From contig JAMWBK010000010.1 in NCBI GenBank assembly GCA_029953675.1, positions 434,001 through 498,000 on the forward strand: a DNA stretch of 64,000 nt, read 5' to 3'. The notes under the pieces were generated by a model, which made no database searches, had not been told where the DNA came from, and worked only from the letters and a program-made list of their open reading frames with translations. Below, piece by piece: positions 4,202-48,430 of the stretch (the first letter of the stretch is position 1; each line of letters begins with the position of its first letter). This DNA comes from Rhodosorus marinus CCMP1338. Taxonomy: Eukaryota; Plantae; Rhodophyta. Made by a program: the position numbers and the translations under genes.

Positions 4202-5320
4202 CTCTGTTCACCGCGATTGGACAAAACAAAACCGGAACAGTATGCTTTCAATCTCAACTCTACAACCTCTGAGGAGCTAGCAAACTGGTCAGTAGCTCTA
4301 CCACCAAGTTAAGTTTCCTCTTCTGTACCAAACCAAGCCCGGAAAGTACTCCAGCGTGCTCCAGCCCGCTCCCACCTTTCAGATCAGCAACCAATGCGCC
4401 GTCCCACGACAAGATATACAACACTGCCAGCCACCGATCGCCAGGAGCGCGATCCCGAAAACTTGCTACGTGCAGAGGGCTGGCTTCTTGACTTTCCCTA
4501 ATCAGCCACTTACAGATCTTCAAAGCAGAATCGAACCCTAAAACCGAAAAACACCGCCGCCTCCCCGTCCCGAGACCCTCTACCAACTACTTGCGTTTAC
4601 AGTCCACAAACACTTCGTATCAATACCCGCATCCCCTAGATCTTCCCTTACAGCTTATCCTACCTCTTCCTTTCCTCCTCCCTCCCCCTCCCTTTCCTAC
4701 CCGTCCAACCCCCGAAAACCTTCCTCCTCCTCCGTTTGATGCCCATTCCAAAATGGCATCAAAAATTTGCATTTCAGTCTACTTGTTGATCAACCATCAG
4801 AGAAATCGAAATCGATGACAAGAAACTCCTCTTCAGTACGAAATATTTAAAATTTTATGAAATAAACAAAAATAGGGCATTCCGCCTCTGTTGGGCCCTC
4901 GCAAAAAAACATGCCGGCGTCCAATGGGTTATCCCATAGACCATAAAACTTCTTCCAAAATATCCTTTTCTGAATACGATCGGGGCCAATCCTATTCCGA
5001 TGTAAGATGTAATATCGTAATTATAAGTAAATAAGGGTAAAATTGATACAGCGGTGTATTTGTTTGTAAGAATGGCTCTATTTCCTGCGTCCGTTTCCCC
5101 GCTTTTTGCCTGGGACGCCGTATCGTATTTATTGGTATTGATGGATATCGTCACTTATTTTCATGAAAATTTGATATTGGAAATGGTTCTTGTATTCGCG
5201 AAATGCCCTGATTTGTTTCCAAATTTCAGTAATGCGAGGGCGTGTGGGTTTGTTCACGAAATGGTGTCGCGATGAGGGATGCTAAATATCGCAGGCTGGT
5301 GAAAGCTCGCACGGAGTTGG

Positions 5321-5970: not shown

Positions 5971-8900
5971 ACCGAGAGAGCGGGCCTCTAATACTTCAGG
6001 CATTGGAATGCTTCACATGCCAGAGAAGCCCCTGCTAGCGTTGCGCTGCATTAGACAGCTGCCCAGTACGGTTACACTCAGTCATTGATAGTCAGTCACG
6101 ACGGACAAATTGACTGACCCGATAGTTTTCTGGCTCATATCGAAAGTCGGACTAGTGCGTCTTGGAAGGTACTCACATGTTTGGCTCTCTCGGAGCAAAC
6201 TTGTGTATCATAGTGATACGAATAGGGCTAGAACTGGGACACTCATCACACTCAGTTTTCTGAGCTGGTGATCGTTGGGGGGAAGTGGATCTGGGAGTTG
6301 GGTGATGTACGACGTTCAAGAGTGACGCTCGAACACTTTAAAATAGCGGGAGAAGGGAGCGCAGTAGGTAAGGAGTTGTCGTTGCCGAGACACAGCAACT
6401 CTAAGAAACGCGGGGCACTCCCACCGTTGCCATGAGTACGTAGGTCGATTTTTTCAGATGCGTAGAGGGGGGGGAAGTGGCCCCATAAAGAAGCCAGGGT
6501 GTTAAGGAGAGCCAACGCCCACCGTACGGGACACATTCCTACTCTAGCCGCTGCCCCGTTTCCAGTCGCGGGAGAGAATCTTCTCCTTTCTATAAAAGCA
6601 TCACGTGCCTACCTAGAAAGTTGTCGACAGCAAGCGCCAGATGCCCCCTTCTCCAAGAACGCTCTAGCTTGTCCATCTCCCTTGACCTCAGCGACTATAC
6701 GTACTTTGATCACGCCACTACATTCCTTCCGTGCGCCACGGTATTTTTCACGTGGGCAAGTCCTGACCGGAGGAATCATAGATGCCTGCCACCAGCACCT
6801 TCCAGCAACCACCACCAACCGTGATGATGAATATTTCAGTCTGTCCTATGAAACCTCCCAGGCTATCCCTCACCTTGAACTGGAGCTCAAAGATATCCCT
6901 AGATGCACGGTCGTAACCACAGCATGAGCGATAAGATTCCTTTCGGCTCACGCGAAAAGGAAGAACTAATGAGGGTGAGCTTCTCCTACGCCAGAGAACA
7001 GGGAAGTCAAACGTGCGTGGATACTTCTGATTTACTGGAAAACGCGTATCACCCCGGGATTGGGGTGATACCTAAGGACTCCGAAAGGGGGATGGTCCTA
7101 GTCATAGTTCTTCCGGTTCTTAACTTCTGGTCAATTTCGGGGCGCACCATATTAGAGAAAAAAAGATCCGTGCAAAAAAAAAAATAAACATATTTTCATC
7201 TGTTTGCCTTTTATTAGCATGGAGAAGGCACGGCATAATTCACAGCATACACGGCACCACCCTTCCCCATTTTCCCTCTGCCTTCTCCACCTAACCCAAA
7301 TAAAGGACGAAATGACGAAGGCTTAAGGAAATAAAAAGTTTCTACCTTGCAGCAAACCGTGGCAAACGCGCACATTTTCTGCACCCCCAAGAAATTGGGA
7401 AAACTTCCTTACAAAAATGCAGTCCCAAAAGCCAAGTATTTTGTTTTTTTGAAAATATTTGGTACGAGGACGAAGAAAAGAAAATGATAGGATTACGAAA
7501 AACAAGCAAAAAAAGGCGAAGACCCGAAAACGCTGCTCTGCCAGGTTTTTTCTCGTATTCACCATAAACTTTACTTAAAAATACAAGGCTTCTTTGATGC
7601 GAACGAATGGTTTAATCGGAGGCTGAAAAAATGAACGTCGAGGGGAAAAAAAGACTAAGTGCGGCGAAGAACTCGCGCGAATGCAACGAAAGCCCTAGAA
7701 CAATCGAATACAAGAATAGTTTAGAACTAAAGTCCACAGGACTCTAAGGTTCACTTGAGGAAAGGGAGAATCGTCAAGGGAGAAGGTGTTTCTTTGAAAT
7801 ACGCAGATTTTGTTTCTAATTACAAAATAGTTTTGACCAATAATTAATAGCTTACATATGCTAATGGCCAATGAAGAATAACATACATCTCATACGAAAA
7901 ATCATTATGTATTTCAAGATATTTCAGAATAGCGGGATGGCTTTTCAACCTCTGCGCGGCCGTCTATTTTTTATAATATTGTTTTACAAAATATTGGGTT
8001 CTAATATAAGACTAAACCCACAAAGGTAAAAACAACGTAGTGAAATATTCACTTCGTCGCAGTGGAGCTGCAGCTGCCACAGTTCACCACCATTCTCCAC
8101 CCCCCCCCTCCCTCTGGGCCACGCTTTAAAGCGTGGCTCCAAAAAATGTACATGGCGCATCTGAATTTCTCGAAGCAAAGAAAAAAATAAGAAATTGCGG
8201 AACAATAAATGCTATCTGAGTTTAGGACGCGAATTTTGGTTGTGCGGGATCGAACCGGGACGACTCGCGCTCCCGCTGCTTTAGGGGGGTGGGGACGCCC
8301 CTTTCTTGTAGTTCCACAACAAAACGTGAATATACGAAACTTGCTGAACTTTTTTGTCTAACGGACGTCAGTTTTGCCTACATTGATTGGATGTATTTGT
8401 CTATTTAGACGCGTGTACAATTATAATTAGTTATTGACACTATCTTAGTCCTTCTACTTGTAGATTTCACTTTTATGTTGAAAAGGTTTGAGAAATTCAT
8501 GGTCTGTTCCGTCTGACAGGACGGGCCCTCGTTTGTGAGCTAAATTGACTAGAACGCACATTTCGTGAATGCGTGTGTTCCCTCAGATTCGTTTCCGTTG
8601 ACTGCGAACTGACTGGAGAGGGCTTTTGCGCTCTCAAAAGGCAAGGCGCACTTGATTACCTCTTCCTTCTGCGCTCCTTAGCAGGTTGAAAAGCTGCAAA
8701 TTCGACACCCGGTTTGTGTCGGTTGGGTATTTTGATCTTCTTTCGTAGGTCACGAAGGGACCAAGCTCGACTCTTAGCAGATCTGGACCAGCCACACTAT
8801 CTTCCTACTAGTGTGTAGTAGTTTCCTCTATCAACGTGCTAGTCATGTATCAACGGAGAAAAGGAGGTTGCCGAATCAAAGCAGATTGTGCTGATTCATC

Positions 8901-9418
8901 TCTCGAGAGACCTGGACGGATGCCCTCATTCGCAATGAGGGACTCTACGGCCGGGAGCTCACACGACAGTTGTAGGCATGTATATATCGTTTTACCATCT
9001 CGACTAAATCCCTTCGAATCTGCAAGAGTAATCCACCCAGACATTGATCAAGCCAGACAAGGTTCTTCTCTACATACGCGTCTACAATACAAAACTTTCA
9101 AAATGATACATAGCCCCATCCGTCCCCTTCGCTTCAAAGGAACTTAGGGTGCAATTTGACAATAATACAGTTAATCAATGTTTGCTACGCAAACTCTCGT
9201 ACGCTTCTCGTCGCTCGAGAACAAAGAGAACATGTCGCTAGTTGAGTCCAATATGCCGCAACTTTCCTGAGCGATCGAAATCAGGACATCTCTGCGAATT
9301 ACCGTGCGCGGAAAGAAGAGTACTTCCGGGAAAAAAACAAAAAAGCCTACGATCGCCACGCCTCATGTCCTCGGCGTCGCTTCCGTAGCCAATTAAAAGT
9401 ACTAAGATAAACAGATTT

Positions 9419-25212: not shown

Positions 25213-26106
25213 CTAGCCGGCTTTAGCCAGAGCGCCGAGCACGGTACCCGAATAAGAAAATGCGAGCTGAGTTTCCTTAAGACAGTCATCCTTCACGTCT
25301 CGTGGCCAGTCCTTTGCAACGTCGTCAATGGTCTTCCGAACCTCAGCGAGGATCTCCTTCACGTCACGATCCCAAACGTAAAAGTCAAACTCAAATCTAC
25401 TCGTTAGAGAAACAATGACCACCTCATTTAGAAGAAGCCGAGGGCACTAGATTCAAGGGAAACTGTCACCAAGCAAAAGCGCTTACCCATCAAAGAGCAT
25501 GCTCGACATCATTCGGCCGATCATGCGGCCGCCGGCTGTATGTGCAAAATAGTAGTTGTACCAGTGGCACAGGAACGCGTTTGGTCGATCAGCAATAAGT
25601 TTCTCCAAATAGACCACATACTTCTCCGCCGCCTTTGAAGGGTCTGGGACGCTGAATCCTTGATCTGTGAACCACACGATGTCCCTCTCCAGCGCGTCGG
25701 TGCGTTCCAGCCCACTGTTCTTAAATCTCGCAAGCGTTTCATCATCCGAGCTCTTAATCTTCCCTTCAATGTACTCATAGACACACTTCGAGTCAACCAA
25801 AAACTGCAGATAATCCTCCTTCGCTGGCCTCCACTCGTTTATTGGCAGCGCACTCTCCTCCTGCATGCCCTCCTTCGCCTGATCCTTGGTGTGCAATTTC
25901 ATCGCCACAAACCTCATCTCCTCAACAAATCCCTTGTGCGAGCCAGGCCTCCTATCCGGATCAGCCTGTCGCGCCGGAGCTTCCGCTTCCCCGTGTCCAT
26001 GGGCCGTAGTCATCGACAGCCTCCCACAAGGACGACTGCAAACCCGAGGACTCCTATTCAACGCTCTCCCAGTTGACAAAAACCCACTCACAAATCCAGC
26101 CACCAT
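25213..26106 (-). CDS. Plastid heme oxygenase (plant HY1/HO1 type), 2 exons
   Basis: MVAGFVSG transit peptide; FVEEMRFVAMKLHTKDQAKEG, FLCHWYNYYFAHTAGGRMIG, CLKETQLAFSYSG. Confidence 0.93.
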
Positions 26107-26397
26107 CACGAGATATCTCTATCTTTCTATTTCCACCCTCTCTACAAAAATAACCAAAGAAAACCTTCCAACCTCTCCCTCCCCCGCCCCTCCCTGTCCC
26201 TCCCTCTCTGACCGAACAATACCTCGACCCCTATATATACTACAAAACCATAAACCCACCCTCCACTACCCCCCAAAATCCACGAAAACTCAACACCAGG
26301 AGATTTTTTTCTATAACAGATATCCGTTGGTGCGCCTCCTCTGAACAAAAAAATTCTCAGATCACAAAGCCCAATACTCTCTTATAATACATACAGC

Positions 26398-26482
26398 TTC
26401 TCTCTCTCTCTCTATCTCTCTCTCTCTCTCTCTCTCCCCCTTTCTCTCTCTATCGCTCTCTCTCTCTCTATCTCTCTCTCTG
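26398..26482. repeat. Interrupted (CT)n/(GA)n microsatellite upstream of the heme oxygenase gene
   Basis: Read directly. Confidence 0.9.
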
Positions 26483-27960
26483 TCTTCTTCATACACAAAA
26501 GTTACTGATCATCTCCCATTACTATAGTCCGTATTCTCATCTTCCTCCCTAACCCCCCCCCCCCCGCTTTCCATTGCTTTGCATGTAGGAAATATCTAGT
26601 ACTAAGAAATACGATATATATAAGTGTCAAAACAAATATCAATCACAATAGTAATATTTTAACATTTAGACAATATATTTGGTTTATATGGACTGAATTT
26701 AGGGATGACAGTTAAATTAGTATTAGAGGACGACTGAACTTGAACTGACCTCCTCGAAAAACGACATTGGAGGTTCTTTTGGGTTTCGTTTTTCGTTTAT
26801 TTGTTTGAGTTTCGATCTGAAAGTAGGTAAAAATTTATCCTCGTTAGCAAAGGGGTGGATGTATAAGGACTTGAGGTTTTACTTATTTGGTATTTTATAG
26901 GTTTTTGGTCGGGATGTGGAGACTATTTGCCTGTGCAAAGGGGGGGTAAAGTGCGGCAGTTGATCGTTGGGAAATGAGAAAGAAGAAAGGCGGAGGGGGG
27001 GGAAGGGGAATGGGGACGGGCATAGTTTGGATTTTTGTTCGTTTTTATAAAAAATATGATGCGATCTGCGAATGCAAGTCCGCACGAAGAAGGGGTGCTG
27101 ACGAGATTTTTTTGAGACATTTCTCACTCGGCGAGGAAAACGGAAGAAAAATTTGTCCGCGCGATGTGGTCTTTGGTTTTTCTTCGAGTTTTTACATTGG
27201 AAGGTCGAGAACATCGGCTCTTTTTTTGGCCCCTAGGGGGTGCGAGCGTTGCAGTTTGTCGAAAATAATTTCGACGTTCAAGACTTAACGACGAGAATCA
27301 AGTTTTTCTTAACAAAATAAAAGAGTTTCTTGTATTGTGTTTGGAAAAGACCTTATCCGACTGATCCTGCGATGGGGTACCATAGACGAAATGGATAAAA
27401 TATATACTGAAATATAACTATTTTTATAAATGTATTATGTAATAAATTAGGAATACTGTAAAATTTAAACAAATAGTCATTTGTATTATAATGTATTTAG
27501 CTAATAATTTTAATTGTCTCATCTAGGGGCATTAAAATAATAAATAAGATTGTTTTGAAAATATGATTAGTTTGGTTTTAATGGATCGGATAGGATTTGG
27601 TTGTAAGGTTTTTTTTTGGACAGATGAGAATGTCGGCTAAAAGGGTTTGGGAACCGAGCTGGTCAGAGTCCGAAGTGCTGGTGAGTGGCAGGTCGCTTCT
27701 CCCTAGTGACGCTCACGAGATAAGCTCATTATCTGTCAAGCCAAGGAGCGCTGCAAATCCGCGCTTCCGGGATTTTCTGGTGACGTTAAAGAATGGGTTG
27801 AATGCGATTGTTCCCGGCGATCTCAGTTTTCCGACAGCTATCATCTGGCCGTGGGGCTCTCTGCAACAGAAGGGATGCGGGAAATTTCCCTGCTACCGTT
27901 CTAGCTTACCGAGTATAGATTGGATTCCAGCTTCCAGCACTGCAAGTATTACGCTGATGG

Positions 27961-28151
27961 ATACTTACCTGGCCGGGCTGATCGCTCCTCACGTAAGAGC
28001 ATCTGCTTGGAAGAGAGTGAGCATAGCACGTCACTTTGTCTTTTCGGACAACTGTGGCAGTCTCGCTTGACTCCTACGAAGTCACCTCTGTGTGACTGTC
28101 GACGGCTTAATTTCTGACCATGGGGAGATTCGCGTTCGCGCGACCTCCCCT
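27961..28151 (+). ncRNA. U1: U1 spliceosomal snRNA sequence (191 nt), probably a retrocopy
   Basis: Starts ATACTTACCTGG. Helix H GCCG/CGGC; SL1 with CTCACGTAAG loop; SL2 with ATAGCAC; SL3 CGAAGTCAC...GTGACTGTCG; Sm site AATTTCTG; terminal SL4 GGGGAG-CGCG-TTCG-CGCG-CTCCCC. Confidence 0.95.
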
Positions 28152-28645
28152 AACTCCCGCGGTGGCATCGGAAATTGCTGATGAGAGTGACGCCCCAGCG
28201 GTACAGCGGGTGGCGGATCTCGTGAATGACCTCAAGGCGCGTCGCAGTGAGTACATTGACCTCTCCATCCCTTGTCCTCAGGCGACCAGGTACCTGCCTG
28301 CTTCGGCTCGGCGTCGAGGAGCTGCAGCTCGGTCCATGCGGCAAGTGAAAGATTCGCAGTACGCGGCAGCGATGTCAAACCCTACCTTGCGCGATTCGGT
28401 GGTGACATACCGGTTCGTCCCCCTCATTATTGAGTGCTTTGGCTTGATAGATAGTGTAGGTTCTCGCTGGCTGCGAGCTCTGTTTCGCAACGACCCAGGG
28501 CGTTTAGATAGTCTGCTCACGGAGCTTTCTTTGACCCTGTGGCGCTCCAATTCTGCTTTGTTTGTGGACGCGCGTCATCAGCGTTCTGTCTCTCGCTTCT
28601 CAGGGTAGTTAGCCTCTGAATAAACGGATCATCATCATCATCATC
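28152..28645 (+). mobile_element. 3' fragment of a restriction-like-endonuclease (CRE-like) non-LTR retrotransposon with (ATC)6 tail
   Basis: Encodes RVADLV...EYIDLSIPCP...KDSQY...FVPLIIECFG...LTELSLTLWRSN, ending at stop 28606-28608; short 3' UTR with AATAAA; (ATC)6 at 28628-28645. Homologous to the copy at 46872-47518. Confidence 0.85.
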
Positions 28646-29210
28646 GATGGTAAGTGATCGAGGAAAATGCGCCCACAGCACCATGCACAGTGGAAAATTG
28701 CACAGATCATTGGCTCCCATTTTACGTCTTATGTCTATTGCTTATCTGGTTTTTAGTTCCAAGGCGAACGCTATACACATCAGAGTCCTCATAACGCGCC
28801 TGTTCTGGGTGCTTGCGGAAGCAGCCTTGCTCCCGTCCTCGGCGTCTTTTTTATCGGTGAGGGCAATCCGTCCTTTATGTAACCTCCTCAAAAACACCAA
28901 TTTGCAACATTCTGTCTCGTACACTCTCAGCCAGGGTTAACTTGACATGACCGGGACTGCTCACAGCCTTTTGAAGAAGACCCTCGGCCCTAAGCACATC
29001 CAGAAAAACGAGCTGAATCTTTAGAATAGGCCCTCAGCTGAAAATAATGGAAAAAAAAAATTCAGCAGACGCTTTGGTAGAATGGTGGGCAGCGCTTGGC
29101 AAGTTCAGATCCCCCTCATAGCATTGGGACTTGCGTCGGAAATGAAATTTGTGCAAGAGTTGATCAGATTTTTATTACAGCGTAACCCCAGCTTAGTCAA
29201 GGGCACAACA

Positions 29211-32315
<3,105 letters not shown>

Positions 32316-46860: not shown

Positions 46861-47529
46861 TTTACAAATCATCATCATCAGTTTATCAGAGCCTAACTAC
46901 CCTGAGAAGCGAGAAACAAGACGCTGATGACGCGCGTCGAACAATAAAGCCGCGTTGGAACGCCATAAGGTCAAGGACAGCTCCGTGAGGAGGCTAGCAA
47001 GACGACTTGGGCTGTGACGAAAGAGCCCACGAAGCCAGCGAGAGCCGACACAATCAACTAAACCAAAGCACTCGATGATGAGTGGAACAAACCCGTAGGA
47101 CAAGGCCGAATCGCGGAGCGCAGAGTCCAACATAGCTGCAGCGTACTGGGACTCCTTCAGTTGCCGCATTGACCGAGCCGCAGCGCCACGGCAGCGTGCA
47201 GATGCGGGTAGGTATCTGGTCGCCTGAGGACAAGGAATAGAAAGGTCAACGTACTCACTCCGACGGGCGCTGAGATCGGTCACCACTAGATCCGCCACCC
47301 GCTGCACCCCTGGTGCGTCAGCCGTATCAGTAATTGTCGTGGCCACGGGCGGAGGGACCTCATACTCCACCTCCCGGTCCGTGCACAGCATCTGGGAACG
47401 AAGATAGCGAAACAGCAACCGGTTGAGCCGCGTATGGCGACGAGTCCGGGCCCCCTGGACCTGCGGACAGGATGCCAACAGGCGTCCACCGAATTCACCG
47501 CACGGCACGTCGCTACCGTTTACAAATCA
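46861..47529 (-). mobile_element. 5'-truncated CRE-like RLE non-LTR retrotransposon copy with 11-bp target-site duplication
   Basis: TSD TTTACAAATCA at 46861-46871 and 47519-47529; (TGA)3 tail on the element sense strand. ORF 46897-47508 has a degenerate zinc-knuckle region, RRH, RVADLV...YVDLSIPCP and KESQY. Confidence 0.92.
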
Positions 47530-47779: not shown

Positions 47780-48430
47780 ATGCTGGCGTGGTTGAAGGAT
47801 TTTGGTGGAACAATGGCGAGAATGGAGATGATTCTGTTGGGTTGTATTGGAGTCTATGGGAGCGGTATTGCGGCCGAGCTTGTGAGACGTAAGAGGAGCG
47901 GAGAGCGGTTGTTTGGAGTTCACGGAGAGCACGACGCGCAGATTGAGGAATGGACGAAGAAGAAAGAGGAGCTGAAGGTGGAAATGGAGAAGGTTAATTC
48001 TCCGTCTACGTTTGTTCAGTATGCAAAGTTGCAACGCCAAGCTCAAAAGTACGAGAACGACATAGAGGAGTTGAAATGTAAGACCGCCAGTTGCCCCTAA
48101 TTCGAAATGATCTTGTTACTGTGGATCGTTCTCAAAGCCAAATCTGTTCTTCTCTACTCCATAGCTGCGGAAAGCAAACGAAAGAAAACGACGAAGTCCA
48201 AGATTCTTCACTGGACTACCCGACTCATGTTGCTGATGTATATAGCAGTCTTCATGACGGCGAAAAAAACCGCGATGGATTTCGACTGTAGTCTCGTCTA
48301 CCCTCTCGGAAAGCTTCCACTAGTATTCCGCGGCTCCTCCGATTATATCTGCGGTCTCTCCGAGTACTCTTGGCTAGTTCTATGCGGTGGGGTGCTCAAC
48401 TACATAACCACGATCTGTTTTGACCTGTGA
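47780..48430 (+). CDS. GET1: GET1/WRB (CHD5-like) tail-anchored protein insertase subunit, 2 exons
   Basis: TM helix, coiled coil with NSPSTFVQYAKLQR, intron 48078-48164, then two further TM segments with YPLG. Start codon uncertain (47780, 47813 or 47822). Confidence 0.8.

Follow-up and report, generated by a model that had tools for sequence, protein, structure and literature searches.

The window analyzed here, a 64-kb stretch of the red alga Rhodosorus marinus CCMP1338 (GCA_029953675.1, JAMWBK010000010.1; record coordinate = window position + 434000), carries a full-length U1 small nuclear RNA (snRNA) sequence joined directly to the 3' part of a long interspersed nuclear element (LINE) of the restriction-like endonuclease (RLE) type, with a single target-site duplication (TSD) around the whole unit. 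We consider this unit to be a one-off snRNA/LINE chimeric retrocopy whose target was chosen without guidance, and we assign this reading a probability of about 0.7. To our knowledge, nearly all described snRNA/LINE chimeras come from the L1 elements of mammals, which are of the apurinic/apyrimidinic endonuclease (APE) type. The present locus points to the same product being made in vivo by an RLE-type, R2-like LINE of a red alga. Such chimeras record the RNAs that a reverse transcriptase encounters inside the nucleus, and they have been proposed as the seed of snRNA-headed short interspersed nuclear elements (SINEs).

The CCMP1338 assembly comprises 31.19 Mb, 8392 genes and 24,821 introns (PMC10250338). 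Our analysis covered ~130 kb of R. marinus DNA from this 31.2-Mb genome, including ~70 kb outside the window, and the annotated gene listing covered positions 1-12 kb and 47-64 kb of the window. Related elements were examined in L001 (JAMWBK010000013.1:827723-850358, 22636 nt) and in two JGI transcript contigs that carry the LINE family (L002 and L003). In addition, the JGI contigs were searched; for the genus Rhodosorus these hold transcriptome material only, so null matches among them are weak evidence.

Anatomy and origin of the U1/LINE insert

The insert and its boundaries, together with a second copy of the same LINE family that served as a control, comprise the following features:

27956-27960 (+): 5' TSD copy, GATGG, an exact 5-nt right-anchored match with 28646-28650
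27961-28150 (+): full-length U1 snRNA retrocopy (RF00003, 84.4 bits, model positions 1-166 of 166)
28151-28153 (+): TAA junction bases of ambiguous origin (U1 3' tail, untemplated, or LINE); the Rfam model ends at 28150 and LINE homology is clear from 28154
28154-28630 (+): 3' part of an RLE-type retrotransposon lacking long terminal repeats (non-LTR), as judged from homologous copies and tblastn, comprising the C-terminal half of the endonuclease domain and a short 3' untranslated region (UTR) that ends AATAAACGGATC
28631-28645 (+): extra (ATC)5 microsatellite beyond the GGATC end of the element, forming (ATC)6 at 28628-28645 with the element's own ATC
28646-28650 (+): 3' TSD copy, GATGG, flush after (ATC)6 and followed by TAAGTGA
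46871-47518 (-): control LINE copy, truncated inside the CCHC motif, U1-less and with a (GAT)n tail; TSD GATTTGTAAA at 47519-47528 and 46861-46870

An Rfam cmscan of the whole window returned a single match above the gathering threshold, namely this U1 (E = 1.8e-19, against a cut-off of 69.5 bits), and the match is untruncated. The copy has the 5' end AUACUUACCUG (positions 1-11, which include ACUUACC), all four stem-loops, stem-loop II being enlarged by 30 nt, and an Sm-like site AAUUUCUGA that precedes stem-loop IV. It lies on the same strand as the LINE open reading frame (ORF), i.e., in sense orientation, and its 5' 17-mer occurs once in the window. The original prediction, which had been made from the sequence letters without database searches, placed a full-length U1 flush after the GATGG at 27956-27960, and the cmscan alignment bears out both the completeness of the U1 and its coordinates.

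Homology with other copies of the LINE family is clear starting at CTCCCGCGGTGGC (28154) and continues to a common 3' end, AATAAACGGATC, with the stop codon of the endonuclease frame at 28606-28608. The tail region (28151-28645, ~495 nt) is 77% identical to the window copy at 46868-47354 (-), 94.5% identical to three copies in L001, which is another R. marinus contig, and 76% identical to a copy in L002, which itself shares 90% identity with the second window copy. In the RLE group of LINEs (R2/NeSL/CRE/R4/Hero), the reverse transcriptase is followed by a CCHC motif and then by a PD-(D/E)XK restriction-like endonuclease. A longer, decayed relative of the tail (L001 10102-12636) encodes a reverse transcriptase (Pfam RVT_1, E = 2e-11), and downstream of it C...HLLASCPAVKGARTRRH aligns to the CCHC/RHN motif of R2 (9nl2_A residues 944-983, E = 7e-4); the window tail aligns by tblastn to residues 158-307 of the RLE ORF of L001. 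Given RVT_1, the CCHC/RHN motif and the alignment of the tail to the C-terminal half of the endonuclease, the tail is therefore, on sequence grounds, the 3' end of an RLE-type LINE, in agreement with the RLE assignment of the original prediction, whose narrower CRE-like label is putative.

Besides the chimera, our analysis identified five copies of this family (one in the window, three in L001 and one in a transcript), which are 5'-truncated at five distinct internal points; the N-terminus is absent in all copies. The motif ...CTTCTCAGGGTAG..AATAAA.. is common to the six 3' ends, beyond which lies a different, unrelated sequence in every case. The 3' termini of the other copies read ...GGA or ...GGATC without a repeat, except for the (GAT)n of the 46871-47518 copy. 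Clear TSDs flank three of the five, at unrelated targets: GATTTGTAAA (10 bp), AAGTGGA (7 bp) and GCTGG (5 bp). A fixed target site is typical of the RLE group, although not strictly defining; here, six unrelated 3' flanks and differing TSDs of 5, 5, 7 and 10 bp were found. This combination is the signature that target-primed reverse transcription leaves in a LINE family: frequent 5' truncation, a stagger of 5-10 bp and no fixed target. U1 is absent from all five other copies and from ~70 kb of other R. marinus DNA. By a hand count on the alignment, a divergence of ~2% separates the U1-bearing copy from the consensus of the three copies most closely related to it, and it is therefore of similar age to them. 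Two other readings of the family were considered and rejected: an element that targets U1 genes, as the other copies are not at U1, and an element that targets microsatellites, as the repeats are at the 3' end only.

The duplication joins the two parts of the insert into one unit. Within 27900-28700, GATGG is present twice, both times flush with an end of the insert; flush matches of 5 nt have an empirical chance of 0.0012 in the window. The last G of the 5' GATGG could be untemplated or cap-derived, in which case the TSD is GATG. The predicted 3' boundary, (ATC)6 with GATGG flush behind it, reads in the sequence as described. No repeat of ≥4 nt flanks the LINE tail alone. Removing the insert and one GATGG gives the empty site ...CGCTGATG/GTAAGTGA (CTGATG/GTAAGTGA, the slash marking the putative exon-intron boundary here and below), and the reconstructed empty allele reads CTGATGGTAAGTGA, also written CGCTGATGGTAAGTGA. 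The 3' flank of the insert is GATGGTAAGTGATCG, which is not U1; a reading of the downstream GTAAGT as an inverted piece of U1 was rejected, given that the match is 7 nt only and stops short of the U1 end.

The position of the duplication bears on a first alternative, namely that a resident, functional U1 gene stood here and that an unrelated LINE fragment was inserted directly downstream. The U1 is indeed intact and well above the Rfam threshold, and no second U1 was found in the sampled DNA. However, the sole duplication encloses U1 together with the tail, LINE sequence occupies the place of the 3'-end processing signal, and the upstream flank is an open frame that runs into U1, with no recognisable snRNA promoter. 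We consider a resident gene with a downstream insertion to be very improbable.

A second alternative is that the unit is a U1-headed SINE or a 5'-transduced master copy, in which a LINE tail lying behind a U1 gene was co-transcribed from the U1 start and repeatedly copied by the LINE machinery. The unit begins at U1 nucleotide 1, where transcription of a U1 gene starts, and finishes at the LINE's own 3' end, as such an origin would have it; moreover, SINEU families with U1 heads are known, and PMC4494074 proposes that they arose by template switching. A U1-headed SINE would also be transcribed from its own head; the promoters of U1 genes lie outside the gene and would be missing from a retrocopy. 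What argues against repeated copying is the distribution of the parts. The 20-mer across the U1/LINE junction has no match in the JGI contigs, although these include at least two transcript contigs with the LINE family (L002 and L003), and the U1 5' 20-mer has no match there either. U1 heads one of the six family copies sampled and is missing from the three closest relatives at 94.5% identity. Finally, at ~690 bp and with an open LINE reading frame, the unit has the look of a LINE copy truncated in the usual way. On this sample of ~130 kb of genome plus the JGI contigs, a SINE or master copy is quite unlikely, and of the two origins offered by the original prediction, a template-switch chimera or a U1-headed SINE, the chimeric retrocopy is the better fit.

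The one-off chimeric retrocopy accounts for these features by a single round of LINE integration, for which we infer the following order of events. The RLE-type LINE would nick the bottom strand immediately upstream of GATGG, and target-primed reverse transcription would start at the 3' end of the LINE RNA (...AAACGGAUC), where slippage would extend it to (AUC)n. After ~495 nt, within the endonuclease-coding region, the reverse transcriptase would quit the element RNA, switch to a mature U1 snRNA at the 3' end of the latter, and copy this RNA through to nucleotide 1. Alternatively to this template switch, the LINE RNA and U1 may have been ligated prior to integration. A second nick, in the top strand 5 bp downstream, followed by fill-in would then produce the GATGG duplication that flanks the whole unit.

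It should be noted that several points weigh against this interpretation. The U1/LINE junction (28150-28154) has no clear microhomology and contains 3 nt (TAA) without an assigned source. No genuine U1 gene of R. marinus that could serve as the source and define the mature 3' end of the U1 was found in the ~130 kb sampled. The junction was seen once in that sample, a small part of a 31.2-Mb genome. Moreover, a 5-bp TSD is short, and the insert abuts seven nucleotides complementary to the 5' end of U1, a position that is improbable under pure chance (0.0015-0.007).

Relation to known snRNA-associated retroelements

The insert has the features that characterize snRNA/LINE chimeras: a full-length sense snRNA at the 5' end, a direct join to a truncated LINE that retains its own 3' terminus, and a single outer TSD. 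U6/L1 and other snRNA/LINE-1 chimeras have been attributed to template switching or to prior RNA ligation, as far as the available portions of the reports describe (PMC4494074, PMC11838501, PMC4476161, PMC6789731; Buzdin 2002 and Garcia-Perez 2007, as cited in PMC4494074). As in the mammalian U6/L1 chimeras described in those portions, the 5' side is a sense, full-length snRNA whose 3' end meets a truncated LINE, and one TSD surrounds the composite. Each U6/L1 junction is described there as unique, and the R. marinus junction has no second copy in the sampled DNA. Unlike the U6/L1 chimeras, the LINE is RLE-type with an R2-like endonuclease rather than APE-type, the tail is (ATC)n rather than poly(A), and the host is a red alga. 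The head also differs, being U1, which among L1 chimeras is rare compared with U6, and the target is a donor-like heptamer complementary to that head.

End-to-end jumps between templates are reported for the reverse transcriptases of APE-type and RLE-type LINEs alike (PMC6895275). Like R2 (PDB 9nl2; PMC6895275), the R. marinus family combines a reverse transcriptase, a CCHC motif and a restriction-like endonuclease, and the insert is consistent with target-primed reverse transcription with template jumping. R2 uses a single 28S rDNA site, whereas the R. marinus family has variable targets with TSDs of 5-10 bp. With this locus, the template jumping of R2-type enzymes, known in vitro, is extended to an insertion that arose in nature, in a distantly related lineage.

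Three other systems resemble the insert in part. First, the crocodilian SINEU elements, which are SINEs headed by U1 or U2, similarly have a U1-derived head and a 3' body mobilised by a retrotransposon; going by the available text (PMC4494074), they are multi-copy with master copies and poly(A), and no partner LINE with the same 3' end is known for them, whereas here the partner LINE is obvious and no second copy of the junction was found in the sampled DNA. Second, the tripartite chimeric pseudogene of Magnaporthe grisea (PMC2104539) is likewise a chimeric retrocopy outside animals that was explained by LINE template jumps; it involves another LINE type and other partner RNAs, and in the part of the report available no relation between partner RNA and target is noted. 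Third, Utopia, a group of RLE LINEs that target U2 snRNA genes (PMC4640811), is also a case of an RLE-type element physically tied to a spliceosomal snRNA sequence. According to the accessible text, however, Utopia and the Dada DNA transposons sit at a fixed position inside snRNA genes, with snRNA on both flanks, while the U1 described here is cargo inside the duplication, and the other R. marinus family copies are not near any snRNA. By the features tested, the insert is a member of the snRNA/LINE chimeric retrocopy class and is not of the Utopia/Dada type; it is not shown to be a SINE. Chimeric accidents of this kind are already known from mammals and fungi, and what sets this one apart is the complementarity between the captured RNA and the target.

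The donor-like target and its complementarity to U1

The original prediction placed the insertion exactly at a 5' splice site. Three features describe the transcript that would have used this site:

27624-27959 (+): putative upstream exon and open frame interrupted by the insert (open frame 27597-28070)
27681-27791 (+): intron-like segment inside the putative upstream exon (donor CTG/GTGAGTGG, 10.0 bits; acceptor 7.7 bits; 111 nt)
28650-28756 (+): putative GT-AG intron of 107 nt in the host transcript that the insert would disrupt (empty-allele donor ATG/GTAAGTGA, from matrix scores)

The donor and acceptor matrices were built from 27 R. marinus introns, drawn from introns deduced from annotated gene ranges and product lengths and from four introns defined by homology; these 27 introns are unverified and were chosen partly on donor score. 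As predicted, the empty site carries a consensus donor complementary to U1 nt 3-9 (GGTAAGT). This candidate donor scores 11.0 bits (training median 8.0), a value reached by 14 of 6886 GT sites in the window (top 0.2%). The acceptor 107 nt downstream scores 8.8 bits (training median 3.7), which places it in the top 0.6% of AG sites, and an acceptor this good lies 65-150 nt downstream of 3.2% of random positions (0.032). The predicted length of the GT-AG segment likewise proved to be ordinary for the region, given that the 27 inferred introns range from 65 to 149 nt and the three introns of the neighbouring DHX15 gene that could be read directly measure 142, 115 and 98 nt.

Other results limit what these scores can say about a gene. 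At the same thresholds, the real window yields 16 donor/acceptor pairs versus 10 in a reversed-sequence control, i.e., ~60% false positives, and several of the real-window pairs lie antisense to known genes. The hexamer GTAAGT is not commoner than expected (15 on both strands of the 64-kb window versus 19.9 from dinucleotide shuffles). The upstream open frame has no Pfam domain, and a search of 5.8 billion proteins at E ≤ 0.01 gave no homologue of this frame, with or without the downstream exon joined to it. Exact annotated products were found for three window ORFs, but not for seven of ten contiguous ORFs, for the ORFs at the insertion locus or for two splice variants of the heme oxygenase, and a query with the DHX15 protein returned proteins all of ≤528 aa, none of them from the R. 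marinus assembly. The codon score of the host ORF is the best of its six frames (0.02), but this is uninformative because antisense ORFs of real genes score 0.08-0.2. The intron-like segment at 27681-27791 hints at an unannotated multi-intron transcript between the heme oxygenase and DHX15 genes. On these sequence-derived scores, we put the odds that the putative donor is a real one at roughly even or a little better; the donor-like sequence of the original prediction is thus present, while a gene that uses it found no backing in homologues, annotated products or the excess of 16 over 10 pairs.

If the donor is real, the insertion displaced it by 690 bp in the downstream direction and introduced a stop codon into the lengthened exon. 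Within stem-loop I of the U1 copy, CAC/GTAAGA at 27993 (+) is also donor-like (7.0 bits) and is in frame with both the upstream ORF and the exon after 28756; if this donor were used, the putative host protein would gain 11 codons instead of being truncated. A near-identical GATGG-GTAAG context, with no insert, occurs at an intron donor of the heme oxygenase gene (~25481-25494, -), which reads TTTGATGG/GTAAGC. In the annotated parts of the window, three of four GTAAGT sites, at 4513 (-), 10510 (-) and 50286 (-), are followed after 285-550 nt by a start codon, with the site on the gene's own strand, which suggests that 5'-UTR introns may be common in this window.

Whether or not the donor is used, its sequence raises the possibility that U1 pairing played a part in the insertion. 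In this scenario, the donor would pair with U1 nt 3-9, either on the melted top strand of the target or in a nascent pre-mRNA, and hold U1 near as the partner of the template switch, or a pre-formed U1-headed RNA would steer the integration complex to the donor; guidance of this kind predicts U1-headed insertions clustered at donor-like sequences. The target GGTAAGT offers seven consecutive bases complementary to U1 nt 3-9, plus a G·U pair, at the boundary of the insert, with the top-strand nick inside the heptamer. In the insert-free window, the chance of a complement of ≥7 nt to U1 nt 1-11 is 0.0015 in sense and 0.0036 on either strand within ±3 nt, and 0.003 and 0.007, respectively, within ±10 nt; GTAAGT occurs at only 15 sites on both strands of the window. 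The five U1-less copies, for their part, are all at non-donor sites. Moreover, PMC6895275 reports that second-strand cleavage by RLE enzymes depends on local single-strandedness and on branched intermediates; an RNA bound at the target might therefore have an effect in principle.

Nevertheless, this is a single post hoc case, and when other possible coincidences are allowed for, the effective chance is nearer 0.02-0.05. None of the strand geometries that we worked through lets U1 pairing set either nick, and for this reason we claim no mechanism of guided nicking. There is no microhomology between GATGG and the U1 5' end, the donor at the target is itself putative, and a target bias of this type goes unmentioned in the available passages on L1 chimeras (PMC4494074, PMC11838501). 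Among the five U1-less copies sampled, TSDs are clear in three, and no insertion site is donor-like. These headless copies off donor-like sites imply that the endonuclease itself has no donor preference, which leaves a single informative case. Conceivably, causality runs the other way, and this is the most defensible version of the pairing idea: a donor-like top strand, or a nascent donor, would keep U1 beside the enzyme. Taken together, U1-tethered or U1-guided insertion is an unlikely explanation, and under the preferred reading of an unguided chimeric retrocopy the match between donor and U1 is most probably due to chance, or at most to the local availability of U1.

If U1 did influence the insertion, LINE integration would have its first example of a bias that is RNA-guided and linked to an snRNA, and a possible route for aiming insertions at exon-intron boundaries. 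Should such complementarity recur genome-wide, RNA-DNA or RNA-RNA pairing would bias either the site of LINE products or the RNA that is captured, which would be relevant to the evolution of intron/exon boundaries and to R2-based genome engineering; on present evidence it amounts to one coincidence.

Neighbouring genes and other repeats

The gene downstream of the insert (29211-32315, -) encodes a DHX15/Prp43-type DEAH helicase. It contains several introns, the three read directly spanning 98-142 nt, and is convergent with the putative host transcript, so that the U1 chimera lies ~560-1250 bp past its stop codon, on the opposite strand. DHX15/Prp43 is itself a splicing factor, and the position of a U1 chimera beside its gene is probably a coincidence. 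Two Logan contigs (L004, SRR22824290; L005, SRR22824282) carry a DHX15 gene with 83% protein and 71% DNA identity to the window gene, from a related organism; these contigs are uninformative on the empty site because they end ~100 nt past the DHX15 stop codon.

On the other side of the insert, positions 26150-26500, upstream of the heme oxygenase start, are GA-rich and of low complexity, translating as RERE/GGGG runs, and positions 26500-27590 are AT-rich and without long ORFs. The control LINE copy sits ~300 bp upstream of an annotated CHD5/Get1-like gene (47813-48430, +).

Finally, L001 (1-22636) is a dense nest of RLE-LINE fragments belonging to at least three subfamilies, with one copy inserted in the antisense reverse transcriptase sequence of another. 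An annotated 163-aa 'gene' in this contig (P0002) is a remnant of a LINE endonuclease, and positions 8118-8935 form a perfect tandem repeat of ~20 units of 9 residues (APVTKAAGS) that is open on both strands.

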